The notes: generated from the sequence alone by a model not told the origin. A stretch of DNA of 64,000 nucleotides from Macrostomum lignano (GCA_002269645.1 NIVC01000387.1:310001-374000), one strand, 5' to 3'. Positions 3,001 to 54,039 are shown, counted from the first letter of the stretch. A program made the numbers and translations.

Positions 3001-6000
3001 GTCCTCTTGCCCCGGGTGCCTCTTCTCCCGACCCCTTGGCCTGGCCCCCAATAATGAGCTGGATAGGCGATGCCCTTGGGTTGGCAGCAATAGAGGTGGA
3101 CGGTCTTCCCGCCTGGAGTCTCCCCCTCGGATACAAGCCTTCCAGACTCACTCCACAATAGAGCTGGGTAGTGAAAAGCCTTGAGGCTCGAGACCTTCAG
3201 GGGATCCACGACCCTGTAGTAGGATCGCTCTTGGTAATAAGCTGCCCAGACTCGCTCCAATAGTTTAAGCCATTTCCAAGGTTTAGGAGTAACTCCTCAC
3301 TCGGACCGCTTTCTTAGTAATATCCAAAGCTTTTCGCTCTCCAATTTTTCTGCGCACTCCCAAGGACTCGCTAGCTGGGGGGTGGCCTGGGTGGACTCGG
3401 TCTTAGCACCGTCCCTGATTCCACTGTTTGGGTTGGCGGTGTCTTGTACCATAGGCTTGAAGTCCCTCGCCCTTTCCCTAGCTTTAAGCTGGGTCCAATC
3501 CCAATGTATCCAAGGGGTATCTCAGGCCCTGGACAGTTAATGCCTTGGCCCCTGGTAGTGCCCCTCAGCGGCAGAGCCCCTCCCAGGGCTTTCTGTGCCC
3601 TTGGCAGTGCCCACTGCGGCAGAGCCCCTCCCAGGGCTGATCCGCGGGTAGCCCCGTAGCTTCCCACCCTCGTTTAACAACAACAACCCTACTGTCAGTA
3701 GTATGGTTCACCCTAACCCTACTGTCAGTAGCATGATTCACCCTAACCCTACTGTCAGTAGCATGATTCACCCTAACCCTACTGTCAGTAGTATGGTTCA
3801 CCCTAACCCTACTGTCAGTAGTATGGTTCACCCTAACCCTACTGTCAGTAGCATGATTCACCCTAACCCTACTGTCAGTAGTATGGTTCAGCCTATCTTT
3901 CTCATAGGTAATTTATTAAGACCTGAGCCAACGCCCCCTCGCACTGATCAGAGCTGCTGCGGTTCATCAAGGAGCTGTACAGCAACACCGTGTTCCTGAC
4001 GCTGTACCTCGGCACAATATTCGAGTTCGGCGCCTTCATCATTCTGATCGGCTATTTTCCTAAGTTCATCGAATCGCATTTCTACGTCAATGCGAACACT
4101 GCAAATATGATGTCCAGTGAGTTGCTGGCAGTAGCTTTTTCAGGACAAATCTAAGACACATTTTAGGACAAATCTCAGATACATTTCAGGACAAATCTCA
4201 GACACATTTCAGGACAAATCTAAGACACATTTCAGGACAAATCTAAGACACATTTTAGGACAAATCTCAGATACATTTCAGGACAAATCTCAGACACATT
4301 TCAGGACAAATCTCAGACACATTTCAGGACAAATCTAAGACACATTTCAGGACAAATCTCAGACACATTTCAGGACAAATCTCAGACACATTTCAGGACA
4401 AATCTCAGACACATTTCAGGACAAATCTCAGACACATTTCAGGACAAATCTCAGACACATTTCAGGACAAATCTCAGACACATTTCAGGACAAATCTCAG
4501 ACACTTTTCAGGACAAATCTCAGACACATTTCAGGACAAATCTCAGACACATTTCAGGACAAATCTCAGACACATTTCAGGACAAATCTCAGACACATTT
4601 CAGGACAAATCTCAGACACATTTCAGGACAAATCTCAGACACATTTCAGGACAAATCTCAGACACATTTCAGGACAAATCTCAGACACATTTCAGGACAA
4701 ATCTCAGACACATTTCAGGACAAATCTCAGACACATTTCAGGACAAATCTCAGACACATTTCAGGACAAATCTCAGACACATTTCAGGACAAATCTCAGA
4801 CACATTTCAGGACAAATCTTAGACACATTTCAGGACAAATCTCAGACACATTTCAGGACAAATCTTAGATGCATTTCAGGACAAATCTCAGATGCATTTC
4901 AGGACAAATCTTAGATGCATTTCAGGACAAATCTTAGACACATTTCAGGACAAATCTCAGACACATTTCAGGACAAATCTTAGATGCATTTCAGGACAAA
5001 TCTCAGACACATTTCAGGACAAATCTTAGACACATTTCAGGACAAATCTCAGACACATTTCAGGACAAATCTTAGATGCATTTCAGGACAAATCTCAGAT
5101 GCATTTCAGGACAAATCTTAGATGCATTTCAGGACAAATCTTAGACACATTTCAGGACAAATCTCAGACACATTTCAGGACAAATCTTAGATGCATTTCA
5201 GGACAAATCTCAGACACATTTCAGGACAAATCTTAGACACATTTCAGGACAAATCTTAGATGCATTTCAGGACAAATCTCAGACACATTTCAGGACAAAT
5301 CTTAGACACATTTCAGGACAAATCTCAGACACATTTCAGGACAAATCTTAGATGCATTTCAGGACAAATCTCAGATGCATTTCAGGACAAATCTCAGATG
5401 CATTTCAGGACAAATCTCAGACACATTTCAGGACAAATCTCAGACACATTTCAGGACAAATCTCAGACACATTTCAGGACAAATCTCAGATGCATTTCAG
5501 GACAAATCTCAGATGCATTTCAGGACAAATCTCAGACACATTTCAGGACAAATCTCAGACACATTTCAGGACAAATCTCAGACACATTTCAGGACAAATC
5601 TCAGACACATTTCAGGACAAATCTCAGACACATTTCAGGACAAATCTCAGACACATTTCAGGACAAATCTCAGATGCATTTCAGGACAAATCTCAGACAC
5701 ATTTCAGGACAAATCTCAGACACATTTCAGGACAAATCTCAGACACATTTCAGGACAAATCTCAGACACATTTCAGGACAAATCTCAGACACATTTCAGG
5801 ACAAATCTCAGACACATTTCAGGACAAATCTCAGACACATTTCAGGACAAATCTCAGACACATTTCAGCACAAATCTCAGACACATTTCAGGACAATTCT
5901 CAGACACATTTCAGGACAATTCTCAGACACATTTCAGGACAATTCTCAGACACATTTCAGCACAAATCTCAGACACATTTCAGGACAAATCTCAGACACA

Positions 6001-9000
6001 TTTCAGGACAAATCTCAGACACATTTCAGGACAAATCTCAGATGCATTTCAGGACAAATCTCAGACCCAGGAGTAATGTCAGACAGCCTGATCACCCACC
6101 ACCCGCCACCATCTCAGGCGTGAGTCTGGCCGGAGCCTCGGCCCTGGCCATCATGATCAGCAGCCTGGTGTCGAAGGTGTTCCCTATGTCGGTGACGCAC
6201 ATGAGCCTGTACCACGCCGTTGTCAACACGATCTCGGCGCTGGCATTCCCGGTGCTGTTTCTGTTCCGCTGCGACAAGGTGGACATGGTGGGGCCGCACA
6301 ACTTTGAGCAGGACGGACAGCTGGCTGAAATGTGAGCAGCTTTGTAGTTTCGATAGAGTGCGAAATGTACTTTAAGCATTGAATCATATCACCATCTGGA
6401 TGCATTAAATTAACTTAAGAAACGCCATGTCAGCCCGTTTTTACGCGCAATTTCATATCCAGAGCAGTAAAACAAAACTTCTACATTCTCTACAATATTG
6501 AATAATCAAAAACTGATAATTGTCGAACAACTGGCAGATCAAAATGCAGCCCATTACACAATAAATTTCCGCATTCGACCCACCAGGACCTGCTACGACC
6601 CGGCCAGCTGTCCCAAGTACGCCTACAACCCCGTGTGCGTGGGCGGCCGCAGCTTCATGACCCCCTGCCTGGCCGGCTGCACCAAACTGCCCGACCTGAA
6701 CGATACGATTGTGAGCTCTCCACAGGGAAAACACTTTTGACCCATCTGACCCACCCATACCAGTCTTGACCCATCTGACCCACCCGAACCACTCTTGACC
6801 CAACTGACCCACCCGAGCCACTCTTGAATCAACTGACCCACCCAAACCAGTCTTGACCCAACGGACCCACCCAAACCAGTCTTGACCCAACGGACCCACC
6901 CAAACCAGTCTTGACCTATCTGACCCACCAAACCAGTCTTGACCGATCTGACCCACCAGAACAGTCTTGACTCACTTGACCCACCAGAACAGTCTTGACT
7001 CACTTGACCCACCTAAAACAGTCTTGACCCATCTGACCCACCAAAACACTCTTGACCCATCTGACCCACCAAAACAGTCTTGACCCATCTGACCCACGGA
7101 AAACACTCTTGATCCATCTGACCCACGGAAAACAGTCTTGACCCATCTGACCCACCAAAACACTCTTGACCCATCTGACCCACCAAAACAGTCTTGACCC
7201 ATCTGACCCACGGAAAACAGTCTTGACCCATCTGACCCACGGAAAACACACTTGACCCATCTGACCCATCTGGAAAAGATTCGAGCTTCCAAAACGCGGC
7301 CCACCCGCAGCCGGGCTACGCGAACTGCCTCTGCTCGAACCAGACCGGGTCGCCGGGCATCTGCGCACCCCAGTGCAGCAACGTGTACGCCTACCTGGTG
7401 CTGTTCTTCTGCATCAGGGTGGTTGGCACCATCGCGGCAGTGCAGTTCACCCTCATCATGATGAAGTAGGAGCTGAAACCATTTGATTAACCTGTTGTGT
7501 CCAAATTCATTAGCTCAGCTTTCAAACACCGCTTCAGAATTCCCAGCTCGCGCGAGATGAAGCCGCTGGCCATGGGTTCGATTTCCTTTCTGTTTGGCCT
7601 GCTGGGTAAGCTGGCTTCATCCTGTAACCCCACCCCACTCAAACAAAGTTTCTTTTTATAGCGTATATCATCGGCGGCAAAAGTTTTCCACTTTCATTGA
7701 CGCATTTCATGCCACCTTTGTGTGCAACATGGCAAAGGACTTTCAACCCGGTCCCTTCACGAAGACCATCTGGGCCTGTCTGTGGGGACTGTCCACCCGG
7801 TCCTTCACAAAGATCATCTAGGCCTGTCTGTGGGGACTGTCCACCCGGTCCCTTCGTGAAGACCTCGGCCTGTCTGTGGGGACTGTCCACCCGGTCCTTC
7901 ACGAAGACCATCTGGGCCTGTCTGTGGGGACTGTTCACCCGGTCCTTCACGAAGACCTCGGCCTGTCTGTGGGGACTGTTCACCCGGTCCTTCACGAAGA
8001 CCTCGGCCTGTCTGTGGGGACTGTCCACACGGTCCTTCACGAAGACCCGGAAGCGGCCACATTTGGCCGAAAAAAAGGTTGTTTTATCCACTGGGACAAT
8101 GATGCCTCATTCACTCGGCAGTCAGGATGAGTGATTTTTGCCAGGAACTTCTTCAATATCGTCGATCGAGCATCCACCGAGCTCACGGGATCTTGGTCCA
8201 GCAGACTTTTGGTTGAAATGGGAGCTTTCGGGTATCCAGATTGTTGGCAATACAGTGCGAACCAAGTGGGAACGAGTCGTGAGGAGCCTTCAAACAGTCG
8301 CATTCGCCCAGACCTTCGAGAACATGGATGAGGCGATGCGAGAAGTCATCCAGCTGGGTGGCGATTGTGTCGAGAAGTCTTAGGGAGAATTCGACTGAGC
8401 CCGTTGCGAGAGCTGAGAGACAGACTTGCTGACATTTGCTTTTTGAAATCACCTCGTGTAGGCTTGCTTTACAAACTGCTAACTCACCTACCTATGGGAT
8501 CACTGCCACTTCACCCAGGTGTGATCACTGTCCACCCACCCCTCCACCACTGGTATGATCACTGCTCCAACCCCGAACCACTGCAGGTGTGATCACTTTC
8601 CCACCCCCAACCACCACAGGTGTGATCACTGCCCCACCACCCCACCACCGCAGGTGTGATCACTGCCCCACCACCCCACCACCGCAGGTGTGATCACTGC
8701 CCCACCTCCCCACCACCGCAGGTGTGATCACTACCCCACCACCCCACCACCGCAGGTGTGATCACTGCCCCACCACCCCACCACCGCAGGTGTGATCACT
8801 GCCCCACCACCCCACCACCGCAGGTGTGATCACTGCCCCACCACCCCACCACCGCAGGTGTGATCACTGCCCCACCACCCCACCACCGCAGGTGTGATCA
8901 CTGCCCCACCACCCCACCACCGCAGGTGTGATCACTGCCCCACCACCCCACCACCGCAGGTGTGATCACTGCCCCACCACCCCACCACCGCAGGTGTGAT

Positions 9001-11533: not shown

Positions 11534-14118
11534 TCAGCAGCTGGGCTGCGCGTTCGCCTGCGGCACAGGCGGCGCCAGCTTGCCGGCTGCCGATTTTGCC
11601 GCGGCCTTGGCGGCGGCCAGCACCGGCCCGGCACCCAGCGCCAGCAGCCCGTCAGCCACTCGGCGGCCCAGCCGGACACAGGCGGCCAGATGGCGGCGGT
11701 CCCGCCCGTCTGGCTCCGGGTAGTGCAGCCCGATGAAGCGCTCGGGAGACTCCGGAGACTCCGCTGCCTCCGCCTTCGTCGCCTCGCCGGCCGACTGCCG
11801 ACGTCGCTTCGCCGACGTCGGCCCCGCCTCCTCCTCGCCAGCGTCCTCCGTCAGCGCCTCGTCAGCCTCGAACTCGAACACCTCTGTGCCGTCCACCGAC
11901 AGCACGCGCGCCTCCAGCTTGAGCCGGCGCGGCGCGTCACCGGCCGCCTCCGACCAGACAGAGCGAACTCCGAGCGGCACCGAGCACCCACCGTCCAGGG
12001 CGCGCAGCAGACTGCGCTCCGCCACCGCCTGCGGGCATTTGGGAATTCGAAACTGTTGAGGATATTCATCATGGAAACTAACCAGCCTCACAAACTGGCA
12101 CTGACCAGCCTCACAAACTGGCACTGACCAGCCTCACAAACTGGCACTGACCAGCCCCATAAACTGGCACTGACCAGCCCCATAAACTGGCACTGACCAG
12201 CCCCACAAACTGGCACTGACCAGCCTCACAAACTGGCACTGACCAGCCCCACAAACTGGCACTGACCAGCCTCACAAACTGGCACTGACCAGCCCCACAA
12301 ACTGGCACTGACCAGCCCCACAAACTGGCACTGACCAGCCCCACAAACTGGCACTGACCAGCCCCACAAACTGGCACTGACCAGCCCCACAAACTGGCAC
12401 TGACCAGCCCCATAAACTGGCACTGACCAGCCTCACAAACTGGCACTGACCAGCCCCACAAACTGGCACTGACCAGCCCCACAAACTGGCACTGACCAGC
12501 CCCATAAACTGGCACTGACCAGCCCCACAAACTGGCACTGACCAGCCCCACAAACTGGCACTGACCAGCCTCACAAACTGGCACTGACCAGCCCCACAAA
12601 CTGGCACTGACCAGCCCCACAAACTGGCACTGACCAGCCCCACAAACTGGCACTGACCAGCCCCATAAACTGGCACTGACCAGCCCCACAAACTGGCACT
12701 GACCAGCCCCACAAACTGGCACTGACCAGCCCCACAAACTGGCACTGACCAGCCCCATAAACTGGCACTGACCAGCCCCATAAACTGGCACTGACCAGCC
12801 TCACAAACTGGCACTGACCAGCCTCACATACTGGCACTGACCAGCCCCACAAACTGGCACTGACCAGCCCCACAAACTGGCACTGACCAGCCTCACAAAC
12901 TGGCACTGACCAGCCCCATAAACTGGCACTGACCAGCCCCATAAACTGGCACTGACCAGCCTCACAAACTGGCACTGACCAGCCTCACAAACTGGCACTG
13001 ACCAGCCCCACAAACTGGCACTGACCAGCCCCACAAACTGGCACTGACCAGCCCCACAAACTGGCACTGACCAGCCTCACAAACTGGCACTGACCAGCCC
13101 CACAAACTGGCACTGACCAGCCCCACAAACTGGCACTGACCAGCCCACAAACTGGCACTGACCAGCCCCACAAACTGGCACTGACCAGCCCCATAAACTG
13201 GCACTGACCAGCCCCACAAACTGGCACTGACCAGCCCCATAAACTGGCACTGACCAGCCCCACAAACTGGCACTGACCAGCCCCCGAAAAAACTGCACAA
13301 AGCCCCATCAGGCTCCGCCCCCGCACCTCCAGGAAGCTGTCCCGGTGCAGCAGGGGCCGCAGCAGCCGCACAGTGTCCTGATCGCCATCGCGGCACTGCA
13401 CAGCGAGGGCGCCCTGTCCCACAGCGGGCAGGCAGTGCTGCAGGCTGCAGGCGATGCGATCAGTCCAGCCCATGCGGACGAGACCAGCCTCGGCCAGGAT
13501 CAGGCCGTCCAGTCCGCACTCCTGGGCGTTCAGCTTTCGCCACCGGGTGCCGAGGTTGCCGCGCACGGACTGGAAGCGGAGGCCCGGGTGCGCCCGGCTG
13601 AGCTGCGCCGAGCGGCGGAGGCTGGACGTGCCGATGACGGAGCCGGGCGGCAGGCCGGCCAGGTCCTTGACGTCGGCCTCCACGTGGCGCGGGTGCAGGA
13701 CGAGGGCGTCGCGCGGCAGCTCCCGGCGCAGGATGCAGGGCACGGCCAGGCCGTCCGGGCACTGGGTGGGCAGGTCCTTCAGCGAGTGCACCACCAGCTG
13801 CACCTGGCCGCTGAGCAGGGCGGCGTCCAGCTCCTGAGTGAACAGGCCTTTGTCGCCGATGTGGGACAGCGCCCTGTCCAGGATCTGGTCCCCGATGGTG
13901 TCCATGTGGACGATGCGGAACTGCCGGCCGCAGTCCGGGCCGAGCTGACGCAGCACCTCGTGCGTCTGGCGCAGTGCCAACTCGCTGCGCCGCGAGCCCA
14001 CCGAGACGACGGGCGGCGCCGATGCTGACACCGAAGCTGCAGAGTCCGCATCGCCAGCAGCTGAGCTCGCGCTCGCAGAGTCGCCGCCGCTGTCCGTCCT
14101 GACAGAGGCCGGCTGCAT
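11534..14118 (-). CDS. HMBS: Hydroxymethylbilane synthase (porphobilinogen deaminase), 428 aa, 2 exons
   Basis: Exons 14118-13327 and 12028-11534. Motifs VGSRRSELAL, GDKGLFTQEL, VHSLKDLP, GTSSLRR, VRGNL, AVGQGALAV and AERSLLRALDGGCSVP (cofactor Cys). Confidence 0.97.
12080..13283. repeat. 23-bp minisatellite (CCAGCCCCACAAACTGGCACTGA)n, about 52 copies, HMBS intron
   Basis: Tandem array filling the intron 12029-13326. Confidence 0.97.
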
Positions 14119-14229
14119 TGCTGATTAGCTGAGGATTTCTATTGGAATTCAATAGAACTGCCGGCCCCCGAACTGCGAAACTGAAATCAGGTTTATTGAC
14201 AGCTGCTTAGCCGCAGGCCTGCGATCGCT

Positions 14230-14660
14230 AATTTAATCCTAAATTAATCCTAATTGATCCTAATCGTACCCTAAGTTGATCCTAACTTGATCCTAATTCG
14301 CCACTAAGTTGATCGTAATCTGACCAAAAGTTTATCCTAATCTGACCCTAATTTAATCCTAATCTGGCCCTAATTTCATCCTAATCCGAGTCTGACCCTA
14401 AGTTGATCCTAATCTGACCCTAAGTTGGTTCTAATCTGACTCTAATTTTATTCTAATCTGACCCTAATTTGATCCTAATCTGACCCAAAGTTGATCCTAA
14501 CCTGACCTTTAGTTTATCCTAATCTGATCCTAATTCGACTCTTAGTTGATCCTAATGTGACTCTAAGTTGATCCTAATCTGATCCTAAGTTAATCCTAAG
14601 TTTATCCTAATCGGACTCTAAGTTGATCCGAATAAGATTCTAAGTTGATCCTAAATTTGA
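14230..14660. repeat. Degenerate ~20-22-bp tandem repeat (TTGATCCTAATCTGACCCTAAG-like)
   Basis: Repeated CCTAA/CTGAC motifs immediately upstream of HMBS. Confidence 0.8.
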
Positions 14661-15530: not shown

Positions 15531-17220
15531 TTCAATCCAGATGTTTTATTTTTCAAACCTCCATGGCTAACGCTACGGAGTTTAGTCAACACTACTATCA
15601 GTAGTATTTGAGTTCAATCCAGATGTTTTATTTTTCAAACGTCCATGGCTAACGCTACGGAGTTTAGTCAACACTACTATCAGTAGTATTTGAGTTCAAT
15701 CCAGATGTTTTATTTTTCAAACCTCCATGGCTAACGCTACGGAGTTTAGTCAACACTACTATCAGTAGTATTTGAGTTCAATCCAGATGTTTTATTTTTC
15801 AAACCTCCATGGCTAACGCTACGGAGTTTAGTCAACACTACTATCAGTAGTATTTGAGTTCAATCCAGATGTTTTATTTTTCAAACGTCCATGGCTAACG
15901 CTACGGAGTTTAGTCAACACTACTATCAGTAGTATTTGAGTTCAATCCAGATGTTTTATTTTTCAAACCTCCATGGCTAACGCTACGGAGTTTAGTCAAC
16001 ACTACTATCAGTAGTATTTGAGTTCAATCCAGATGTTTTATTTTTCAAACGTCCATGGCTAACGCTACGGAGTTTAGTCAACACTACTATCAGTAGTATT
16101 TGAGTTCAATCCAGATGTTTTATTTTTCAAACCTCCATGGCTAACGCTACGGAGTTTAGTCAACACTACTATCAGTAGTATTTGAGTTCAATCCAGATGT
16201 TTTATTTTTCAAACGTCCATGGCTAACGCTACGGAGTTTAGTCAACACTACTATCAGTAGTATTTGAGTTCAATCCAGATGTTTTATTTTTCAAACCTCC
16301 ATGGCTAACGCTACGGAGTTTAGTCAACACTACTATCAGTAGTATTTGAGTTCAATCCAGATGTTTTATTTTTCAAACGTCCATGGCTAACGCTACGGAG
16401 TTTAGTCAACACTACTATCAGTAGTATTTGAGTTCAATCCAGATGTTTTATTTTTCAAACCTCCATGGCTAACGCTACGGAGTTTAGTCAACACTACTAT
16501 CAGTAGTATTTGAGTTCAATCCAGATGTTTTATTTTTCAAACGTCCATGGCTAACGCTACGGAGTTTAGTCAACACTACTATCAGTAGTATTTGAGTTCA
16601 ATCCAGATGTTTTATTTTTCAAACCTCCATGGCTAACGCTACGGAGTTTAGTCAACACTACTATCAGTAGTATTTGAGTTCAATCCAGATGTTTTATTTT
16701 TCAAACGTCCATGGCTAACGCTACGGAGTTTAGTCAACACTACTATCAGTAGTATTTGAGTTCAATCCAGATGTTTTATTTTTCAAACCTCCATGGCTAA
16801 CGCTACGGAGTTTAGTCAACACTACTATCAGTAGTATTTGAGTTCAATCCAGATGTTTTATTTTTCAAACGTCCATGGCTAACGCTACGGAGTTTAGTCA
16901 ACACTACTATCAGTAGTATTTGAGTTCAATCCAGATGTTTTATTTTTCAAACCTCCATGGCTAACGCTACGGAGTTTAGTCAACACTACTATCAGTAGTA
17001 TTTGAGTTCAATCCAGATGTTTTATTTTTCAAACCTCCATGGCTAACGCTACGGAGTTTAGTCAACACTACTATCAGTAGTATTTGAGTTCAATCCAGAT
17101 GTTTTATTTTTCAAACCTCCATGGCTAACGCTACGGAGTTTAGTCAACACTACTATCAGTAGTATTTGAGTTCAATCCAGATGTTTTATTTTTCAAACCT
17201 CCATGGCTAACGCTACGGAG
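15531..17220. repeat. 82-bp satellite, 21 copies, each with AATAAA on the minus strand
   Basis: Unit starts at 15531, 15613 ... 17171 (20 x 82). A C/G variant (AAACCTCC vs AAACGTCC) alternates over most of the array. Confidence 0.96.
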
Positions 17221-17308
17221 TTGATTAAAACTACTATTAGTAGCATTTGAGTCAATACTACATAGCTACTTGTGCAGGCAGCCTCCAGTTGCGAAGGCAT
17301 CAGTAGTC

Positions 17309-19741: not shown

Positions 19742-20568
19742 AACAGAGGAACAGGGGATGGGGGAAGGCTGGGGAGCTGCGGAGACGTTCGGAAACTCTT
19801 GGAGCTGCTTTCGCTGAAAGCAAGAGCGGAGGGAAACTGGATGAGCACCAATTTAAATGGAAAGCAAAAGGCGAGACGAGGTTGGCTGCAGATGCCGCAT
19901 TGCCCAACCCCAGGCCAAGCGAGCAGCCACTCTCAGCCAAGCCAACCGGCTTATCAGTAAAAATGGGATGCCAGCAGGCGGCTCTGGCGTTGGCGTGACG
20001 AATGAGCTTTCACCCACTCGTGCTCGAAGGCCTGTCGTTCAGAGAACAACTCGAATCGGGATAGCAGGGCGGCTGGGGCTCAAATCTCAGTGGCAAATAT
20101 TCATCTGCAAACTCCTAATTAAAAACTGGGACTCCCCTGCCTGATGAAAACGGTACCCAGGACAAGAAGCGTCCCAGAGTCACTTGCGTCGCCCAGTCAT
20201 CGTAGGTAACACAGGTAAAATAGGAAAGATGACTCTAGACGACTCTAAAACGACAAGATGTCACGGTTACACAGTAGAAGTCGTCAAAAGTTGTTAAAGA
20301 GTCGCCCAAGAGTAAATTTGAGGCATTTGATTGTCTGCGACTCTGAAACGACTCCGGATTGACACAAGTGATTTTGACTCTGGGACCATCGAGTTTTACC
20401 TGAGGCATGCTGGAGTTGCTGTTGAGTCACTGAGTTGCGTCTAAAGCGCATCTGCATCACTTTATGAATTAGACTAAGTAGAAATCAGTCTTCTTGAGTT
20501 AGTAGAAAATAAAGTGCTAACATGACTGTTAGACGACTCTTATAATTCTACAACTCAGGTGATGTTCT

Positions 20569-21216
20569 TTAGTGTTCCGCCATAGCCGTAGCTATGGCTA
20601 CAAGATCCTACGGCAAATATGGTAAAATAGGTGCCTACGGCAGCTACGGATATGCCTACAGTAGCTAGCTGCTCTTACGGCTACAACTATGGAAATATGG
20701 TAGTTGTTGTCACATTCCGTAGATTCCCGTAGCCGTAGTTATTCATGTTAAAACATTAAAAAAATTTTAGAAACAGGTAGAGTAAAACAAAGATACTTTT
20801 AGTAAACTGTATTATCAACTTAGAAACTTTTAAAATATACCTTAAAAAGTACAATAAAACACTAGCAAACTCTAATTTTTATTGATGTGAAAAAGTTCAG
20901 CATTAGTACTTTCAGTAACAATATTAAGTATTGTTGCTTGGAAAAAAGACAAAATAAAATCTTACAAAGGCAATTGAGTGTTTCTTTTATTTTCTAACTT
21001 AATTTGCAGTTGTTTAAGCACCAGGTTATCTTCTTGATTAAAAATATTTTGTTTTCTAGACTTTTTGTTAAAACTACAGCTATGGCTACGGGAACTACAG
21101 GAATATGGTAATATTAGGGTCCCTACAGCTATGGAATATAGAGAATTGGAATAAGCTGTAGTTTTGCTTACGGCTATGGCTATGGTACATGGACCTTCCT
21201 TATGGCGGAACACTAA
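20569..21216. mobile_element. 648-bp non-autonomous DNA transposon (MITE), 16-bp perfect TIRs, 6-bp TSD
   Basis: TIRs TTAGTGTTCCGCCATA ... TATGGCGGAACACTAA, flanked by TGTTCT at 20563-20568 and 21217-21222; subterminal CCGTAG/CTACGG/CTATGG repeats. Confidence 0.85.
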
Positions 21217-21394
21217 TGTTCTCATGACTCAAAAGTTGCCTTTTAATCACATTACAGTTGTTTGAGTAGTCATTAAAAAGCTATAAGTCACCCCAGCATT
21301 GCTAGAGCCATTAGTGAGTTGTTTGCAATGACTTAATTGATTCTTGTCATGGTAATGTTTCAATGGTCTTGAAGCCTGTCTGAGACTTTTTAAA

Positions 21395-21685
21395 TAACTG
21401 TTGACTTACAACTTAAAGGTTATGGGTTCAATTCATGCCCAAACTGGAACAATTTGTGTCCTTAAGCAAGAAACTTGACTCTGAATTGTTTCAGCTCACC
21501 TAGCTATAAAATGGATGCCAGCATTAGCTGGGGTAATTGAGGGTATATGTGGTGACCCCTTAGTCCTTAGACTAAATAGCCAAAGGTAGCCTTTAGATAC
21601 ATTTTGCAATAGCTGCTGCTAAGCTTTTGGTTGCATACCTGCCTAATTAGGGCAAGTGTATTAAATGATTAATTATTATTGACTA
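21395..21685 (+). mobile_element. CORE-type tRNA SINE, heavily mutated copy
   Basis: Aligns along its length with the minus-strand copies at 31.7k and 34.2k, including the core TGTGTCCTT(A/G)AGCAAG..ACTT..AAAATGG and an (ATT)n tail. Confidence 0.85.
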
Positions 21686-23092
21686 CAATAGCACAAAATA
21701 AAAGCTATAAAGGAATTATATTAGCCTGGAGCCATTAAAGAGTAAATAGGCAAATGAGTGTTTGGAGATACCAAAATGAAATATGCCATTATAAATATAT
21801 AGATCTAGGATAAATAGACCTTGAACTAAGAGATTACCAAGTAAGACAAGAAATAAAAAAAAATTAGTCATCAATAGTAGCTAAAAATATTTTTGGAAAG
21901 AAAAGCCAATATTGGGCAATGAAGGACAATCACTATTATATGAGACTTGGATAGATTATAAATATATGGCAATACCAAAAAATTTAAGTCTAAGAGTATG
22001 CTTCAATAACCAAATTATTACCAAACTAATAATTGACACAAAATATGCCAAAAAGCCCTAGTAGCCTAGCTTTGCTGCTTAGGTTTAGAGAGTAGAAAGT
22101 TATGGCTAGAGTTGGATTAGAGCTACCACTTGTTTATGACTAGTTTTGGATTAAAAGCTTTAATATAATTGCTTAAGTATACTTATTGCCAATATATAGG
22201 GTATAGATAAATATATATCATTTTAAATTATATTTTAAAATCATGAATAAGACCATGTTTGATAATTAATATGATAGATACTATGCATATACATAACTTC
22301 ATAAGCTTTTTATCATTTTTATGATGTATTTATGAGGCCATATTAATGTAAGACAATCTTATAAATTATATTTAGTTTTATATCTAAAAATCTATTTTTT
22401 CAATGAAATATTTTAAAGTAGGCCTATAAGGATTATTTTATTAAATATTTTTAACATTTATAAGAGCTTCATAGGCCTAAGTGCCTTTTTGAATTTTGAT
22501 TATAAGCATCTAATATAGAGCCCTGTCTGATAAAGCCTATGAAAATAATATATTTATTAATATTAATTATTTCCAATTTTAAAAATAACAACAGGCCTAC
22601 AAAAGTACTATAGTCTAGAGATAGGCCTATAAAGAAAAAAAAACTAAAAAATTATATCAATGCCTACATTAAAAGGCATAAAAATTGGTTAGAGTTAGAG
22701 AGACCTATAAAGCATTATATTGAAAATATTTGTATACCTACAAAACTAACTTTTTGGTTTAAAATGATCAATAGTGCCCTAAGCCATAAGTCTTTAACTT
22801 ATGCCTACAAAGGCTAAATGGACAAAAATGTACTACAAAAGTCTTACAATTTTAGAATACAAAAAGTTTTATAACATTTCATTACATGACAAATTGTCAA
22901 AAGTAAGGCATCCTCTTTTTTTAAATACCTGCACCCCGGGCCTGCAGCAATGACCACGCGACTGGGGGCCGAGGTGGTGACGCCCGCAGACGGGAAACTT
23001 TACAAGAAGCGCAGCAGTAAAACAAAAAATTGACTCAGAATTTGAACTATTTAAAATTACTAACTACGAAGAATAATTTAAGTGGCGCACCC

Positions 23093-23433
23093 ACAAAGGG
23101 CCTGTCAACTTAAGCTCATAAAGTGGAGCCCGAGTAACCTATATACACTAATGATACGTCATTCTGCTCACCGTGACACCAAGAAGCAGGGTTTGGCAAA
23201 AAAGCGACGAATATTGGACTTGTAAATAATTAAGGGACTATTATATGTCAACTTAAGCTCATAAATTAGAGTCCCTGTAATTATCCCCTTGCTTGTTCTC
23301 CCCTATCCCAAGTCCAATTTTAGTCACTGCCAAACCCTGCTTCCTGGTGTTCACTGTACGTGAGCAGAATGACGTATCATTTGTGTACATGGGTTACTCG
23401 GACTCCATGAGCTTAATTTGACAGGCCTTTTGT
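23093..23433. mobile_element. ~340-bp foldback/MITE-like element with ~105-bp imperfect inverted arms
   Basis: ACAAAGGGCCTGTCAACTTAAGCTCAT..GAAGCAGGGTTTGGC versus GCCAAACCCTGCTTC..ATGAGCTTAATTTGACAGGCCTTTTGT; no TSD found. Confidence 0.7.
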
Positions 23434-23799: not shown

Positions 23800-24620
23800 T
23801 CAATCCTCCTTCATGAGCCACAGCATTTCAGCAATCCCCCATGAGCTTTGACGTAGCTCAGCAATCTCCCCGTAAGCCTCAGCAATTCCCCCATTAGTCT
23901 TTTTATGGTCTGAACCCTAACCCTAAAACTCTAACCCTGTTAAGAGTCACAGCAACAGCAATTCCGCATGAGTCTTTACAGAATTTCAGCTACAGTATTC
24001 TCCCGGCCATATAATAATAAATCATATAATATAAGATCTATGGTCTCGACATCTCAACAATTTCCCTCTCATGAGATCTAACATCCTATAAATTACCTCA
24101 ATGAGTATTTTATGGACAGGGCGATTCTTTTATTGCTGAACCCAGCTTTAACCCAGACGAAAGCCACATGCAGCATTTTAGCAATTCCCTACCACAGATC
24201 TTGACATTTCAACGATTCCCTCCATGAGCCTTGACATCCTAGCAATTCCTCAAACGAGTCTTATGGTTGAAATGACAATATCAACCATGCTACATTGTCA
24301 TGCTTTGGCAAGTAAATATACGAGCCGTAAGACGTGGACAAAATTATACAGTTTAGGCAATTACGTCTAGCTCATAGACTTGTATCAGTGATATACATGT
24401 AGATTCCTAAATTTAGAATTCTATTGCATTTTTAGTAGATTTGACTAGCAATTGCCCCCCCCTCCGGGAGGACACAAAACTGCACCCCCTAAGCTTGCCA
24501 TCTCAGCAATTCCCCCAGAAGCCTCGACATTTCAGCCATTTACCCAGTAAGCCTTCAGATCTCGTCAATTCACCCAGTAAGCCTTGCCATCTCAGCAATT
24601 CCCCCACGAGTCTTAAAGGC
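23800..24620. repeat. Dispersed degenerate copies of the AGCCTTGACATCTCAGCAATTCCCC motif
   Basis: Same motif as the clean array at 39483-39855. Confidence 0.7.
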
Positions 24621-25821: not shown

Positions 25822-28800
25822 ATGAATTTTATTATCCGAGGTGTTCTGGGCCTCGTGCTTTTCTTCGTTTTGTTTAATGTGGCCCGGAATCTGTTCTACG
25901 ACCTGTACGCCAGCAACTGGCACAGGGCCAGCCGAGAGAACACGGCTGGCAAGCGGGTGCTCATCACCGGCTCGAGTCGAGGCATCGGAGAGGCCCTGGC
26001 GCATGTCTACGCGGAGCTTGGCGCTCACGTGACTGTCCACGCGAGGCGGTTGGACTCGCTTGAGAAGGTGTGCGAAAGTTCACTGTTTAAATTGAATACA
26101 AAAAACCTGCATGCATCCAGAGAGCCAAGCTAGCCTACTCAAAAAATTTCTCTTGCTTGCAGATTCGAGCCGAGTGCCGCCGACTCGGCGCTGCCAGTGT
26201 GCACGCAGTCGCCGGCGACATGTCCTCGCCGGGCAGGGCCGCTCAGGTGGTGGCTGACGCGGCAGCTGCGATGGGTGGCGGCCTGGACATCGTGGTGGTG
26301 AACCACATCAGCCCGTCAGAGCTGACAACGTTGTCGCGGGCGATGCCCGACTCTGCTCAGAAGCAGCTGGCCGCCATGCAGACGAACTACTTCAGCTACG
26401 TGGAGGCCGCCCGGGCCGCCCTGCCGCACCTGGAGAAGTCGGCCGGCAGCCTCGTGCTGATCTCCTCGGCCGCCGCCCGCCTGCCCATCCCCTACTGCTA
26501 CGAGTACTGCGCCTCCAAGCGCGCTCTGGAGGGCTTCTTCTCGACGCTGCGCCAGGAGCTGGCGCTGAACGGGTCCGCCGTGCACGCCGGCCTGGCTGTC
26601 CTGGGCCTGATTGGCACAGATAGCGCCAGGCAGACTGTGCCGTGAGCAGAGTTCTTACGTTACTCGTAGAAATTAAGTTAGCGTTATGTTAGACAGCAAA
26701 TGCATGATTGCTATCGGGGACTGACTGAGTAAAGACGGGATGAGCACGAAAGCAAAATTTCACCGATGCCGAAAAATCCTTCAAAGCCCGTCACAAGACT
26801 GACAACTTTTGTCACGTCTTTGAAAGGCTTGTGAAGTAAACTCCCAATGACATTTTCCTGCGAAACAATATGCTTTGACGTAGCCCTTCAGTTTAGACAG
26901 GTGTAGGCAGGTGACTGTACGAGAAGGTGACTTAGTAGGCAGGTGACTAAGAAGGCAATGGGCAGGTTACTTAGAAGGCAGTAAGGCAGGTGACTTAGAA
27001 GGCAGTAAGGCAGGTGACTTAGAAGGCAGTAAGGCAGGTGACTTAGAAGGCAGTAAGGCAGGTGACTTAGAAGGCAGTAAGGCAGGTGACTTAGAAGGCA
27101 GTAAGGCAGGTGACTTAGAAGGCAGTAAGGCAGGTGACTTAGAAGGCAGTAAGGCAGGTGACTTAGAAGGCAGTAAGGCAGGTGACTTAGAAGGCAGTAA
27201 GGCAGGTGACTTAGAAGGCAGTAAGGGAGGTGACTTAGAAGGCAGTAAGGCAGGTGACTTAGAAGGCAGTAAGGCAGGTGACTAAGAAGGCAGTAAGGCA
27301 GGTGACTTAGAAGGCAGTAAGGCAGGTGACTTAGAAGGCAGTAAGGGAGGTGACTTAGAAGGCAGTAAGGCAGGTGACTTAGAAGGCAGTAAGGCAGGTG
27401 ACTAAGAAGGCAGTAAGGCAGGTGACTTAGAAGGCAGTAAGGCAGGTGACTTAGAAGGCAGTAAGGCAGGTGACTGTAGAAAGTGACTTAGGAGGCAATA
27501 GGCAGGTTACTTAGAAGGCAGTAAGGCAGGTGACTTAGAAGGCAGTAAGGCAGGTTACTTAGAAGGCAGTAAGGCAGGTGACTTAGAAGGCAGTAAGGCA
27601 GGTGACTTAGAAGGCAGTAAGGCAGGTGACTTAGAAGGCAGTAAGGCAGGTGACTAAGAAGGCAGTAAGGCAGGTGACTTAGAAGGCAGTAAGGCAGGTG
27701 ACTTAGAAGGCAGTAAGGCAGGTGACTAAGAAGGCAGTAAGGCAGGTGACTTAGAAGGCAATAGGCAGGTTACTTAGAAGGCAGTAAGGCAGGTGACTAA
27801 GAAGGCAATAGGCAGGTGACTTAGAAGGCAGTAAGGCAGGTGACTAAGAAGGCAGTAAGGCAGGTGACTTAGAAGGCAATAGGCAGGTTACTTAGAAGGC
27901 AGTAAGGCAGGTGACTAAGAAGGCAATAGGCAGGTGACTTAGAAGGCAGTAAGGCAGGTGACTAAGAAGGCAGTAAGGCAGGTGACTTAGAAGGCAATAG
28001 GCAGGTTACTTAGAAGGCAGTAAGGCAGGTGACTAAGAAGGCAATAGGCAGGTGACTTAGAAGGCAGTAAGGCAGGTGACTTAGAAGGCAGTAAGGCAGG
28101 TGACTAAGAAGGCAGTAGGCATGCAGGTTACTTAGAAGGCAGTAAGGCAGGTGACTAAGAAGGCAATAGGCAGGTGACTTAGAAGGCAGTAAGGCAGGTG
28201 ACTAAGAAGGCAATAGGCAGGTGACTTAGAAGGCAGTAAGGCAGGTGACTAAGAAGGCAATAGGCAGGTGACTTAGAAGGCAGTAAGGCAGGTGACTTAG
28301 AAGGCAGTAAGGCAGGTGACTAAGAAGGCAGTAGGCATGCAGGTTACTTAGAAGGCAGTAAGGCAGGTGACTAAGAAGGCAATAGGCAGGTGACTTAGAA
28401 GGCAGTAAGGCAGGTGACTAAGAAGGCAGTAAGGCAGGTGACTTAGAAGGCAATAGGCAGGTTACTTAGAAGGCAGTAAGGCAGGTGACTAAGAAGGCAA
28501 TAGGCAGGTGACTTAGAAGGCAGTAAGGCAGGTGACTTAGAAGGCAATAGGCAGGTTACTTAGAAGGCAGTAAGGCAGGTGACTAAGAAGGCAATAGGCA
28601 GGTGACTTAGAAGGCAGTAAGGCAGGTGACTTAGAAGGCAGTAAGGCAGGTGACTTAGAAGGCAGTAAGGCAGGTGACTAAGAAGGCAGTAGGCATGCAG
28701 GTTACTTAGAAGGCAGTAAGGCAGGTGACTAAGAAGGCAATAGGCAGGTGACTTAGAAGGCAGTAAGGCAGGTGACTAAGAAGGCAGTAAGGCAGGTGAC

Positions 28801-31417
28801 TTAGAAGGCAATAGGCAGGTTACTTAGAAGGCAGTAAGGCAGGTGACTAAGAAGGCAATAGGCAGGTGACTTAGAAGGCAGTAAGGCAGGTGACTTAGAA
28901 GGCAATAGGCAGGTTACTTAGAAGGCAGTAAGGCAGGTGACTAAGAAGGCAATAGGCAGGTGACTTAGAAGGCAGTAAGGCAGGTGACTTAGAAGGCAGT
29001 AAGGCAGGTGACTTAGAAGGCAGTAAGGCAGGTGACTTAGAAGGCAATAGGCATGCAGGTTACTTAGAAGGCAGTAAGGCAGGTGACTAAGAAGGCAATA
29101 GGCAGGTGACTTAGAAGGCAGTAAGGCAGGTGACTAAGAAGGCAGTAAGGCAGGTGACTTAGAAGGCAATAGGCAGGTTACTTAGAAGGCAGTAAGGCAG
29201 GTGACTAAGAAGGCAATAGGCAGGTGACTTAGAAGGCAGTAAGGCAGGTGACTTAGAAGGCAATAGGCAGGTTACTTAGAAGGCAGTAAGGCAGGTGACT
29301 AAGAAGGCAATAGGCAGGTGACTTAGAAGGCAGTAAGGCAGGTGACTTAGAAGGCAGTAAGGCAGGTGACTTAGAAGGCAGTAAGGCAGGTGACTTAGAA
29401 GGCAGTAAGGCAGGTGACTAAGAAGGCAGTAAGGCAGGTGACTTAGAAGGCAGTAAGGCAGGTGACTTAGAAGGCAGTAAGGCAGGTGACTAAGAAGGCA
29501 GTAAGGCAGGTGACTTAGAAGGCAATAGGCAGGTTACTTAGAAGGCAGTAAGGCAGGTGACTAAGAAGGCAATAGGCAGGTGACTTAGAAGGCAGTAAGG
29601 CAGGTGACTAAGAAGGCAGTAAGGCAGGTGACTTAGAAGGCAATAGGCAGGTTACTTAGAAGGCAGTAAGGCAGGTGACTAAGAAGGCAATAGGCAGGTG
29701 ACTTAGAAGGCAGTAAGGCAGGTGACTAAGAAGGCAGTAAGGCAGGTGACTTAGAAGGCAATAGGCAGGTTACTTAGAAGGCAGTAAGGCAGGTGACTAA
29801 GAAGGCAATAGGCAGGTGACTTAGAAGGCAGTAAGGCAGGTGACTTAGAAGGCAGTAAGGCAGGTGACTAAGAAGGCAGTAGGCATGCAGGTTACTTAGA
29901 AGGCAGTAAGGCAGGTGACTAAGAAGGCAATAGGCAGGTGACTTAGAAGGCAGTAAGGCAGGTGACTAAGAAGGCAATAGGCAGGTGACTAAGAAGGCAA
30001 TAGGCAGGTGACTTAGAAGGCAGTAAGGCAGGTGACTAAGAAGGCAATAGGCAGGTGACTTAGAAGGCAGTAAGGCAGGTGACTTAGAAGGCAGTAAGGC
30101 AGGTGACTAAGAAGGCAGTAGGCATGCAGGTTACTTAGAAGGCAGTAAGGCAGGTGACTAAGAAGGCAATAGGCAGGTGACTTAGAAGGCAGTAAGGCAG
30201 GTGACTAAGAAGGCAGTAAGGCAGGTGACTTAGAAGGCAATAGGCAGGTTACTTAGAAGGCAGTAAGGCAGGTGACTAAGAAGGCAATAGGCAGGTGACT
30301 TAGAAGGCAGTAAGGCAGGTGACTTAGAAGGCAATAGGCAGGTTACTTAGAAGGCAGTAAGGCAGGTGACTAAGAAGGCAATAGGCAGGTGACTAAGAAG
30401 GCAGTAAGGCAGGTGACTTAGAAGGCAGTAAGGCAGGTGACTTAGAAGGCAGTAAGGCAGGTGACTAAGAAGGCAGTAGGCATGCAGGTTACTTAGAAGG
30501 CAGTAAGGCAGGTGACTAAGAAGGCAATAGGCAGGTGACTTAGAAGGCAGTAAGGCAGGTGACTAAGAAGGCAGTAAGGCAGGTGACTTAGAAGGCAATA
30601 GGCAGGTTACTTAGAAGGCAGTAAGGCAGGTGACTAAGAAGGCAATAGGCAGGTGACTTAGAAGGCAGTAAGGCAGGTGACTTAGAAGGCAATAGGCAGG
30701 TTACTTAGAAGGCAGTAAGGCAGGTGACTAAGAAGGCAATAGGCAGGTGACTTAGAAGGCAGTAAGGCAGGTGACTTAGAAGGCAGTAAGGCAGGTGACT
30801 TAGAAGGCAGTAAGGCAGGTGACTAAGAAGGCAGTAGGCATGCAGGTTACTTAGAAGGCAGTAAGGCAGGTGACTAAGAAGGCAATAGGCAGGTGACTTA
30901 GAAGGCAGTAAGGCAGGTGACTAAGAAGGCAGTAAGGCAGGTGACTTAGAAGGCAATAGGCAGGTTACTTAGAAGGCAGTAAGGCAGGTGACTAAGAAGG
31001 CAATAGGCAGGTGACTTAGAAGGCAGTAAGGCAGGTGACTTAGAAGGCAATAGGCAGGTTACTTAGAAGGCAGTAAGGCAGGTGACTTAGAAGGCAATAG
31101 GCATGCAGGGGACTTAGAAGGCATAAGACGAGTGCGAGGTTCCTGGCTAAGAGAAGCTTCTACATGTATAAAAAGATGAAAACAGCGCTCCGGTTTCCCC
31201 CAATATTCCACATGACCTGGACTGCAGCAAGTACAGCAAGGGCTCCAGCTTAGACTTTGCGTCTCCGGTGGCCACGGCGCTGGACGTCACCGCCATCCCA
31301 GTTGGCCGGCTGCGCGAGCTGGCGAGTCCCTGGAAGATGCGAGTGCCTCTGCTGCTGGGCGGCTGGGCGCCGGAGCACATTGAGCGGCACCTGCAGGCTC
31401 TCACTAGGATCCTCTGA
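25822..31417 (+). CDS. Short-chain dehydrogenase/reductase, 11-beta-hydroxysteroid dehydrogenase 1-like, 3 exons
   Basis: Exons 25822-26067, 26163-26641 and 31228-31417, phase-compatible. N-terminal TM anchor, VLITGSSRGIG (TGxxxGxG), VVVNHI, catalytic YCASK, ALEGFFSTLRQEL. Confidence 0.9.
26925..31125. repeat. 23-24-bp minisatellite (GTGACTTAGAAGGCAGTAAGGCAG)n, about 175 copies, with variant units
   Basis: Fills about 4.2 kb of SDR intron 2. Confidence 0.97.
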
Positions 31418-31734
31418 GGCAGAGGTGCAATTTTCTAATGCCTTTGATGAAGCAGAGGAGACAGGAACACAAGAACATGCTGTTCAAGTTTGAATTAAAA
31501 TTTTACTGTCAGACTTAAGAACTGCTTGCCTCCATTAGCAGTAATGCCCCTTTCTCGATTGCCATAGCGAAAAGATCAAGGAAGCTATACAAGCTAAAAT
31601 TTTAACCCGTATCAAATTTCAAACGAGAACAAGATCGCAAAAACGTGAAGAAGTTGCCGGACTTACAAATTCATGGAAACAATAGCGGCAATAGCCGATT
31701 TGAGTCGATTTGAACTGAGCTTCATTCAGCTAAT

Positions 31735-32048
31735 TAATAATAATACTAACTGATTACACCTGCCCCAATTGGGCCAGATGTGCAACCGACAGCTCAGCCG
31801 CAGCCATTGCTGCGGGCTGCGAATCTGAAGGCTGCGAACGGCTGTTCAGTCCGAGGACTGGGGGGTCGCCACACACCCTCAATTACTCCAGCTAATGCTG
31901 GCACCCATTTTACAGCTGGGTGAACTGAAGCAATGCAGAGTTAAGTATCTTGCTCAAGGACACAAATTGTTCCAGTGGTATCGGGAATCGAACCTCCGAC
32001 CTTCAAATCATGAGTCCGACGTTCTAACCTCCAATCTACAACCCCTAC
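31735..32048 (-). mobile_element. CORE-type tRNA-derived SINE
   Basis: The minus strand reads a tRNA head with B box GGTTCGATTCC, a MIR-core-like GTGTCCTTGAGCAAGATACTTAACTC..CTGTAAAATGGG, and an (ATT)n tail. Confidence 0.88.
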
Positions 32049-33721: not shown

Positions 33722-34164
33722 TACACCGCGGCCAAAGCTATTGTAAAACCACTTGATACAGAAATTTTACATTTGCTCAATTCTGTTCATTTTAATTCAC
33801 ACACGCTCAAAACAGCGCATACGCAAGACAGGTTTGTTAATCCAGTTAGGAAAGTGCAGCCACTCGCTGAAAAAAGAATTTTTAATTCTTTATCATAGCC
33901 CACGACACCAAAAACACCATCTTTGCAGCTATGAAGTCCCGAGCATGCGAGTATTGCAGCACTGTGGGTGCTTTTCATTGAATTCGCAACCGCGTCCATC
34001 GGCGGCAGGGTTCGAGGCGGCTAACTGGATTTGGGTTGCTCGCGGCAGACTGGCCCATAAGAGTTGCAAGCTTTAATTATGCATGGCTCACAGAAAGGAG
34101 CCATTATGAGCAGGTTTCATCAACAGAACCGGGAATGATGTGGTCTTCATCTTCTTCATCTCTA

Positions 34165-34468
34165 ATAATAATAATAATAAAATTGATTACACCTACCCTA
34201 TTGGGCAGATGTGCAACCGGACAGCTCAGCCGCAGCTTATTGCGCGGCGCATCTGAAGGCTGCGAACGGCTGTTCAGTCCAAGGACTGGGGGGTCGCCAC
34301 ACCCTCAATTACCCCAGCTAATGCTGGCATCCTGAAGCTGGGTGAACTGAAGCAATGCAGAGTTAAGTGTCTTGCTCAAGGACACAAATTGTTACAGTGG
34401 GATCCCGAGTCGAACCCCCGACCTTCAAGTCGTGAGTCCGACGCTCCGACCACTCGGCCACAACGCCA
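34165..34468 (-). mobile_element. CORE-type tRNA-derived SINE, third copy
   Basis: Highly similar to 31735-32048; B box GGTTCGACTC and an (ATT)n tail. Confidence 0.88.
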
Positions 34469-53200: not shown

Positions 53201-53769
53201 ACATATAGGTTGTATCATTAGTTTAGTTTTAATTGAAACTTACATTGTAAAAATGCAAACTACAAAAAATGTTCTTTATTGTTGCAATTGCAAAAAAGGT
53301 CCTTTATTGTCACAACTGCAATTAGTGTCAGCGTTCATTGATTCAAAGCATTCTGGCATTCACTTAGCATGATCTAGACTATGGGTTATAATTGTAAGTG
53401 ACAAACTTGTAATGCAAAAAATAAAAGACTATTCAGTTAAAAAATAAAGATATGTGTCATTAATATAACTGATAGTGATATATTTGATATATATGGCCTT
53501 GTGGTAATAAATTGGCACAAACGCTAAAAAGATTAAAGTTTTTATATTATGAATAATTTGTTTCAAATCTATTATTGTATCTATATATAAATATGATTGA
53601 TTAAACCAAAATAATGCATGATAATAAGGCAATCCTTTGGATTCCCACTCTAAATTATTTTTTGACTCTGTTTTTGACCTTTTCAGCTACTGACTGAATG
53701 GCTAGCCGACTTAGAGCGCCACTATCTATCGTGCTTGCTGCCAAAGTTGTCAACAGCATCTTGCTGTGT

Positions 53770-53925: not shown

Positions 53926-54039
53926 ATTCATGTGGCACCAAGCTTTTCCTGAATGGCAATTTGGCAATATCCTCTACTGGATTATACACTACTACCCTAT
54001 GTAGTAACTTGAACTTATTTAACCTCTATAACTCATTTT

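Follow-up and report, generated by a model that had tools for sequence, protein, structure and literature searches.

The 64,000-nucleotide stretch of the Macrostomum lignano genome analyzed here (GCA_002269645.1, NIVC01000387.1:310001-374000; referred to below as the window, with positions counted from its first letter) contains an AT-rich island at 21208-22936 that is free of CpG, and within this island lies a copy of a short interspersed nuclear element (SINE) that has lost all of its CpG and about a third of its CpA dinucleotides. Comparison of this copy with two intact paralogs in the window revealed an excess of C>T changes that is specific to sequence context, affects both strands and depends on position. 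The decay does not depend on homology, and the CpA footprint is peculiar to this island within the window. These features could be accounted for by a small germline island, probably a transposon relic, that was densely methylated, so that deamination of 5-methylcytosine (5mC) would have removed the CpGs while a spill-over of DNMT3-type methylation to CAG removed part of the CpAs. Judged from the sequence, this explanation has in our view an even chance of being correct. It would be a variant of a known process, and genome-wide and methylome confirmation is needed before it is called a property of the organism.

Substitutions in the decayed SINE copy

The decayed SINE (21394..21685, plus strand) consists of a tRNA-like head, a central segment that is a candidate MIR-like CORE, and an (ATT)n tail, and it has no CpG, 30 TpA and a GC content of 0.38. 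The two intact paralogs that served as references are both located on the minus strand, at 31732..32041 (13 CpG, GC 0.50) and 34163..34463 (16 CpG, GC 0.52), and each has only 13-14 TpA. As the initial annotation of this DNA had stated, the decayed copy can be aligned to both of them: 21394/21403-21685 matches 34170-34438 and 31731-32016 on the minus strand with 75-78% identity, and the two paralogs share 90% identity. Alignment is poor at the 5′ end of the decayed copy. No SINE copies beyond these three were found in the window using nhmmer and a transition-tolerant Smith-Waterman scan, and ARAGORN and Rfam scans of the window gave no hits. The central segment (...CCTTGAGCAAGACACTTAAC...CAGCTGTAAAATGGG) and the B box GGTTCGA have what we take to be a likeness to the MIR core, which serves as a lead and not as a test. 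The observations that bear on a CORE-SINE assignment are the presence of this B box and the recurrence of the same head and core, with a different 3′ half, in 47 metagenome contigs. Two segments of the decayed copy, 21450-21470 (ACTGGAACAATTTGTGTCCTT) and 21513-21545 (GATGCCAGCATTAGCTGGGGTAATTGAGGG), are unchanged and carry at most one change in each paralog. This may reflect chance (roughly estimated at ~0.03) or local constraint.

Changes private to the decayed copy were counted at alignment columns in which the two paralogs are identical. None of the 11 CpGs common to both paralogs survives (11/11 lost), nor do those found in just one paralog, and CpG positions across the SINE body number 16, so the earlier observation that every alignable CpG is gone was borne out in full (0 CpG against 16 and 13). 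Eight of the 11 shared CpGs were replaced by a transition product (TG, CA or TA), and the other three are transversions or fall within poorly aligned patches. Two CpGs were converted fully to TpA in the decayed copy. Outside of CpG, transitions were observed at 11 of 36 CpA/TpG sites (31%), compared to 2 of 30 CpT sites (7%), 1 of 29 CpC sites (3%) and 4 of 106 A/T sites (4%). The difference between CpA and the combined CpT and CpC sites (11/36 vs 3/59) is significant by Fisher's test (p=0.0017; odds ratio 8.2), with the same p value when the sequences were aligned using MAFFT L-INS-i or G-INS-i and p=0.0003 at high gap penalties. Plain AT-biased ageing, which the initial annotation had named as the outcome that would undo its claim, predicts that CpA changes no faster than CpC and CpT; the observed rates are 31% and 5%, and the claim survives the comparison. 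Its hand count of about 15 CpA>TpA changes is fair, as the columns where the paralogs disagree add 2-3 cases to the 11 strict ones. Its statement that only a handful of other substitutions occur was too strong, since the 49 private differences include approximately 16 transversions, some of them within two badly aligned patches, in addition to the 4 A/T transitions.

CAG accounts for seven of the 11 CpA changes and was hit at 7 of 15 sites; the cytosine of CTG, which is located opposite in the same trinucleotide, was hit at none of 15 (p=0.006), and CAA was hit at 2 of 8 sites. The rates in the SINE follow the order CpA > CpT > CpC, are asymmetric, and show a preference at the +2 position, as would be expected of the footprint of a DNMT3-type enzyme. 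In terms of strand, 15 changes were C>T and 11 were G>A, and these fall into 14 strand runs where 13.7 are expected, indicating that the strands were not hit in a coordinated manner.

The excess of CpA changes is not a matter of age. When all changes at A/T sites are considered, the decayed copy has 9 in 106 (8.5%), the paralog at 34k has 7 in 104 and the paralog at 31k has 4 in 101. Because these divergences are alike, the decayed copy is not much older than the other two, and yet a paralog of similar age retains 16 CpGs; its 8.5% lies near the 4-7% of the paralogs, which argues that extra age is not the cause of the decay.

An outgroup for the SINE was obtained from metagenome data. The first metagenome scan, with a pattern from the 3′ core, gave 0 SINE matches, and the second, with a CORE pattern, gave the 47 contigs mentioned above (mostly JACSEG01...), which belong to another eukaryote and have a GC content of 0.41 and a CpG observed/expected ratio (o/e) of 0.57. 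Homology of this family to the SINE is confined to the head and CORE in the 5′ half, and its 3′ half is different; the family was used as an outgroup and as a control of the method, not to build a consensus. Some T/A sites of the decayed copy can be tested without depending on the pattern that was used to find the outgroup. These are the head TCA, CCCAG, the CG of the B box and the G that precedes TAAAATGG, and at all of them the outgroup has C or G. In the outgroup copies themselves, C>T changes were found at 5.6% of CpA sites and 5.7% of CpT/CpC sites. The equality of these rates indicates that the counting procedure does not create a CpA bias.

Extent and composition of the CpG-free island

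The island at 21208-22936 spans 1,731 bp and has a GC content of 0.29. Its base composition predicts 36.6 CpG but none is present, in agreement with the initial annotation, which had found none in about 1.7 kb around the SINE. Even if the window-wide CpG o/e of 0.64 is assumed, the probability of zero CpG is about 7e-11. With satellite arrays excluded, the island is the second-longest CpG-free run of the window, most of which is a mosaic with a GC content of 0.45-0.65 and a CpG o/e of 0.7-1.0. The local loss of CpG relative to neighboring DNA, through transitions on both strands, is characteristic of methylation-driven decay. The TpA-rich character and the retention of GGCC that had been noted earlier were also found: TpA has an o/e of 1.04 in the island versus 0.67-0.80 in CpG-normal DNA, and GGCC occurs five times, or 2.9/kb versus 3.9/kb elsewhere. 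The TpG/CpA excess that normally compensates for methylation-driven CpG loss is absent. The CA/TG o/e of the island is 1.05, compared to 1.49 predicted for CpG-only decay and 1.41 in a transposase relic of the same window (described below). A further decay of CpA/TpG to TpA would explain this lack of a surplus.

The same signature was seen in the part of the island that lies outside the SINE. There, all four trinucleotides that contain CG are absent, and the next most depleted are CAG/CTG, with an o/e of 0.48 or 0.31 times the reference value. TAG/CTA reaches 1.85 times the reference, CAC/GTG is reduced to 0.60, and AGC/GCT is enriched rather than depleted. Between 21601 and 22800 there are 8 CAG/CTG and 66 TAG/CTA, while the neighboring segment at 19801-20400 has 29 and 8, respectively. 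The CAG-depleted zone coincides with the CpG-free zone, the signature ends at the island edge, and on the TAG/CAG index the interval at 21.4-22.8k ranks first across the whole sequence. Forward simulations that started from CpG-normal sequence of the same window resulted in a CAG o/e of 2.15 with CpG-only decay, 1.70 with context-free C>T change and 0.38 with a CAG-preferring process, compared to the observed 0.48. The model with a high rate at CAG also gave values for TA, CA, CAC and CAA that are near those observed.

The origin of the island DNA was searched for in several ways. The 1.4 kb of non-SINE island sequence was compared with the rest of the window under a scoring scheme tolerant of C>T and G>A, and nothing scored above shuffled controls. 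A six-frame Pfam scan of the island found no coding remnants, and no terminal repeats were found that delimit the island, or the transposase relic, as a single transposon. Nine copies of the palindromic octamer TAGGCCTA are present in the window versus 1.0 expected (at 9630, 22419, 22472, 22622, 43803, 52421, 52710, 57662 and 57863), and 8 of the 9 copies lie within AT-rich stretches. Three copies together with CAGGCCTA form a cluster inside the island (22419..22629), and further copies are found in the other AT-rich islands. The octamer might be a binding site, derive from a repeat relic that these stretches have in common, or have survived the decay.

Three other non-satellite stretches of the window are AT-rich (GC 0.22-0.32) and have no or almost no CpG: 43113-44911 and 50783-53331, each of which consists of two runs split by a single CpG, and 57061-57581. 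A weak similarity of 63% was found between 22337-22480 and 52709-52850. A search of the window for further repeats of which a copy falls within a CpG-free island gave only a pair with both copies inside the 50k island.

Dependence of the decay on position

At its left edge the island adjoins a younger miniature inverted-repeat transposable element (MITE) at 20569..21216, which has a perfect 16-nt terminal inverted repeat (TTAGTGTTCCGCCATA), a target site duplication (TGTTCT), and subterminal CTACGG/CCGTAG repeats. These repeats show that the decay follows position and extends into the adjoining arm of the MITE. Most CpGs are gone from the arm that faces the island (21060-21216) but not from the far arm: in the island-side arm 1 CCGTAG/CTACGG motif is intact and 8 are decayed by one transition, and in the far arm the numbers are 7 and 4 (p=0.028). 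At the right edge the transition is abrupt. The segment at 22937..23092 is GC- and CpG-rich, with 10 CpG in about 150 bp, and is followed by a foldback MITE (23093-23433). This foldback element and a similar one at 57754-58116 have inverted arms of up to 48-54 nt with 81-92% complementarity and no further copies in the window.

Other features of the window

A relic of a P-element/THAP9-like transposase is present at 53880-56562 (plus strand) in four open reading frame pieces that include a THAP domain and a TNP-like RNase H. Its CpG o/e of 0.32, CA/TG o/e of 1.41 and TA o/e of 0.52 are those of ordinary CpG decay. The only database relatives of its reading frame are six metagenomic proteins with 44-62% identity, and a 19-kb ENA contig that carries a THAP9-like relative has no DNA in common with the window. 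The cellular genes are GC-rich and intron-poor and include HMBS (11.5-14.1k) and a thiolase-SCP2 fusion (SCPx, 40-43k), both on the minus strand, as well as a short-chain dehydrogenase (26.1k) and a universal stress protein (46.8k). Identity to database proteins does not exceed 58% for HMBS and 75% for SCPx. The THAP9-like relic, the SCPx fusion and the MIR-like SINE suggest by themselves that the DNA is from an animal. A 729-amino acid open reading frame at 58842-61031 (minus strand) is GC-rich and includes tandem copies of a 39-bp unit (60190-60554).

More than 25 minisatellite arrays were found in the window, including those at 26937-31127, 15531-17256, 4138-6066 and 12077-13284, and several of them read as long spurious open reading frames. 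Among the arrays are a 4.2-kb one with a 24/47-bp unit and strong GC and AT skew and a 23-bp one that fills an HMBS intron. The array at 15531-17256 consists of 21 copies of an 82-bp unit (1.7 kb) that are 98% identical and have a CpG o/e of 0.9. Telomere-like CCCTAA/CCTAA motifs occur inside interstitial minisatellites at 2219-2614, 14223-14657 and 23915-23935.

Favored explanation and alternatives

Under the favored explanation, the island would be an old relic, probably transposon-derived or heterochromatic, that is or was densely cytosine-methylated within a genome that is largely unmethylated around it, where the CpG o/e is about 0.8-1.0. Spontaneous deamination of 5mC would have erased all of the CpGs in the island. 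De novo enzymes of the DNMT3 type would also have methylated CpA, at a lower rate and with CAG as a preferred non-CpG target, and the same process could then have turned about one-third of the CpA sites, and nearly half of those at CAG, into TpA. The SINE would have been mutated because it resides in the patch, not because it was targeted as a repeat. The loss of CpG over the length of the island, with CpG kept by the flanks and by the SINE paralogs, forms a mosaic such as local methylation should produce, and the lack of strand coordination is as expected of slow accumulation on duplex DNA. The low CpG o/e of the nearby THAP relic indicates that transposon-linked CpG decay does occur in this genome. 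By our estimate, passive decay fits the numbers if CpG is far past saturation: if CpA were methylated at approximately 5% of the level of CpG, each CpA site would have received the observed 0.3-0.4 hits by the time that several are expected per CpG.

Several points weigh against this explanation. The direct evidence from substitutions comes from one 290-bp copy with 27 C/G transitions, and the compositional arguments presuppose that the non-SINE part of the island once resembled the DNA around it. The islands at 43113-44911 and 50783-53331 have lost CpG and kept CAG, with CAG o/e values of 0.92 and 1.32, so a spill-over to CpA is not a general companion of CpG loss in the window. CAC was not hit in the SINE (0/7), yet it is depleted in the flanks. 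CpA hits are more frequent at TCA (6/10) than at other NCA sites (5/24, p=0.045), which a deaminase model predicts likewise. The GCC/GGC o/e of 5 in the island, where the absolute density of these trinucleotides is the same as in normal DNA, was not reproduced by any of the simulated decay models. No DNMT gene is present in the window, nor is a gene of the RID/Masc1 or DIM-2 type. Lastly, mammals have germline methylation of CpA, yet we know of no comparable CpA footprint in them, so a passive origin would need methylation that was very long-lasting or very dense.

One alternative is that no special CpA process operated, and that the island underwent ordinary CpG decay while the TpA sites of the decayed SINE were derived from a different or older source subfamily, with some contribution of chance. 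The comparison is based on three copies, the paralogs are closer to each other than to the decayed copy and may share a younger master, the 5′ end aligns poorly, and the other CpG-free islands lack strong CAG loss, all of which favor a subfamily difference. The initial annotation had itself raised this possibility, and it is weakened by three of the results above: the outgroup has C or G at each of the testable sites, which supports these as the ancestral states; divergence at A/T sites is like that of the paralogs; and the loss of CAG and gain of TAG also extend through the non-SINE DNA of the island and end at its edge. In addition, the paralogs' master would have required approximately 11 T>C or A>G changes that all created CpA/TpG, against 4 other A/T transitions. 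We therefore consider the subfamily alternative doubtful.

A second alternative is an active, enzyme-driven C>T mutator that is aimed at heterochromatin, in which either a methyltransferase acts as the deaminase, as has been proposed for RID and DIM-2/DIM-5, or a deaminase is recruited, and which would be an animal analogue of the heterochromatin branch of repeat-induced point mutation (RIP) in fungi. Total loss of CpG and 31% loss of CpA at an A/T-site divergence of 8.5% imply that CpG mutated tens of times faster than background or more, and the two CpGs that went all the way to TpA and the abrupt right edge of the island also suit such an activity. Homology of the mutated segment itself would not strictly be needed, given that the DIM-2/DIM-5 route in Neurospora mutates single-copy DNA beside repeats (PMC12543289). 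The runs of strand-coordinated changes that a mutator would leave are absent, however, and the standard RIP indices are negative. Intact repeats lie nearby, namely two SINE copies and the 98%-identical, CpG-bearing array of 82 bp x 21; the order CpG>=CpA>>CpT is unlike that in Neurospora; and the graded loss of CpG into the MITE arm suits slow spreading over a burst. Our search of the literature for RIP-like or CpA-context hypermutation in animals found only work on fungal RIP and vertebrate APOBEC. An active mutator at this locus seems unlikely. The corresponding claim for the lineage, that this animal has a heterochromatin-directed cytosine mutator that changes C to T at CpG and CAG in small silenced islands by position and not by homology, is slightly less likely still. 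If it were true, the contents of such islands would be permanently inactivated, and the mutator would be the animal counterpart of the DIM-2/DIM-5 branch of RIP.

It is also conceivable that the composition is intrinsic, in that the island belongs to an AT-rich, CpG-free repeat or transposon family with TAGGCCTA that never resembled its neighbors, in which case only the evidence from the SINE would stand. The excess of GCC, which is unmatched by decay models, and the recurrence of TAGGCCTA (9 vs 1.0 expected, 8 in AT-rich stretches) are not explained by decay and hint at an AT-rich repeat common to the islands, and the 63% similarity between 22337-22480 and 52709-52850 points in the same direction. 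On the other hand, the embedded SINE directly shows C>T decay in place, the adjacent MITE arm has decayed as well, significant homology between the islands is limited to one 150-bp match, and there is no coding remnant, all of which make an intrinsic origin improbable. Last and even less probable is an AID/APOBEC-like deaminase with a TpC (TCA) preference that acted on cDNA of the SINE during retroposition or locally on DNA that was exposed in single-stranded form: TCA makes up 6 of the 11 CpA hits and was hit at 6 of 10 sites versus 0 of 8 for TCT and TCC, but TCT alone was hit at 0 of 4 although APOBEC3A/B-type enzymes also hit TCT, TCA in the flanks is hardly depleted (0.87 of the reference vs 0.31 for CAG), and the CpG and CAG loss spans 1.4 kb of non-SINE DNA. 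Editing of cDNA by a cytidine deaminase was rejected, because the two strands were hit about equally and without strand runs and because the changes spread beyond the SINE.

The question of methylation or mutator matters because methylation scars in animals are usually viewed as a CpG phenomenon. A clear germline scar at CpA (CAG) in a mosaic, mostly CpG-rich animal genome would mean either that non-CpG methylation of germ cells is sufficiently heavy to shape the sequence or that an enzyme actively deaminates cytosine within silenced chromatin, and both outcomes bear on the evolution of transposon silencing by methylation before the vertebrates. If the signature fails to generalize, the locus is no more than a methylated transposon relic of the ordinary kind.

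Comparison with known systems

Plant CHG methylation by CMT3 is similar to the present case in that CAG/CTG is depleted. It is symmetric, however, whereas here CAG was hit at 7 of 15 sites and CTG at none, and symmetric CHG methylation was rejected on this basis. As in hypermutation of retroelements by APOBEC3, a retroposon copy has acquired many C>T changes, and TCA is somewhat enriched among the affected sites. The changes in the island differ in that they are not strand-specific, are not confined to the retroposon and include no hits at TCT; neither the strand clusters (14 runs vs 13.7 expected) nor the general preference for the preceding nucleotide (TpC, CpC or WRC) of AID/APOBEC enzymes was seen, with TCA hit at 6/10, TCT+TCC at 0/8, and AGC/GCT enriched.

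RIP in ascomycetes (RID; DIM-2/DIM-5) resembles the decay described here in that C>T changes, including CpA>TpA, affect both strands and leave an AT-rich and TpA-rich block with many TAG and TAA stops. In Neurospora the order of preference is CpA>CpT>CpG>CpC, and a SINE of 290 bp is below the usual length threshold of RIP. In the island the preference for CpA over CpT and CpC is present (11/36 vs 3/59), but CpG was hit at least as hard and is the most affected dinucleotide rather than a minor one. Duplication did not trigger the decay, as the other SINE copies keep 13 and 16 CpGs and the 82-bp x 21 array is intact. The cut-offs for RIP are TpA/ApT >= 0.89, (CpA+TpG)/(ApC+GpT) <= 1.03 and a composite index > 0. 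The island values are 1.08, 1.37 and -0.29, so that only the product index passes; of the two indices that the initial annotation had called for, TpA/ApT is thus in the range of RIP and the substrate index is not. The substrate index is inflated by the TpG and CpA products of CpG decay. Of the methylation-linked regional mutagenesis that it had proposed, the regional extent, the specificity for CpG and then CpA, the effect on both strands and the departure from AT-biased ageing all stand, whereas RIP in the fungal sense does not. Enzymes of the methyltransferase family are implicated in RIP, and DIM-2/DIM-5 in Neurospora mutates non-repeated DNA near repeats (PMC12543289).

The closest likeness for the CpA component is the non-CpG methylation that DNMT3A and DNMT3B carry out in neurons, embryonic stem cells and germ cells of mammals. 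Methylation marks define that system, while here the evidence consists of mutations, and CAC, which DNMT3A prefers, was hit at 0 of 7 sites. The choice between CAG and CAC is set by the residue K777 of DNMT3B, which corresponds to R836 of DNMT3A. We know of no germline mutational footprint of methylated CpA of this size. The two are alike in the order CpG >> CpA > CpT > CpC and in that the C of CAG is hit and that of CTG is not. The non-CpG activity of DNMT3 enzymes follows CpA>CpT>CpC, and CAG is preferred by DNMT3B-like enzymes (PMC9530848).

The CpG component is best compared with the decay of methylated CpG in silenced transposons, such as vertebrate Alu and L1 elements, and in the methylated, CpG-depleted compartments of mosaic invertebrate genomes. 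It differs from these in that the loss in the island is total, the surplus of TpG/CpA is absent, and CpA sites carry a second footprint that consists chiefly of CAG>TAG. As in these systems, CpG loss in the island is local and position-dependent and proceeds through C>T changes on both strands, while neighboring DNA and paralogous copies keep their CpGs.

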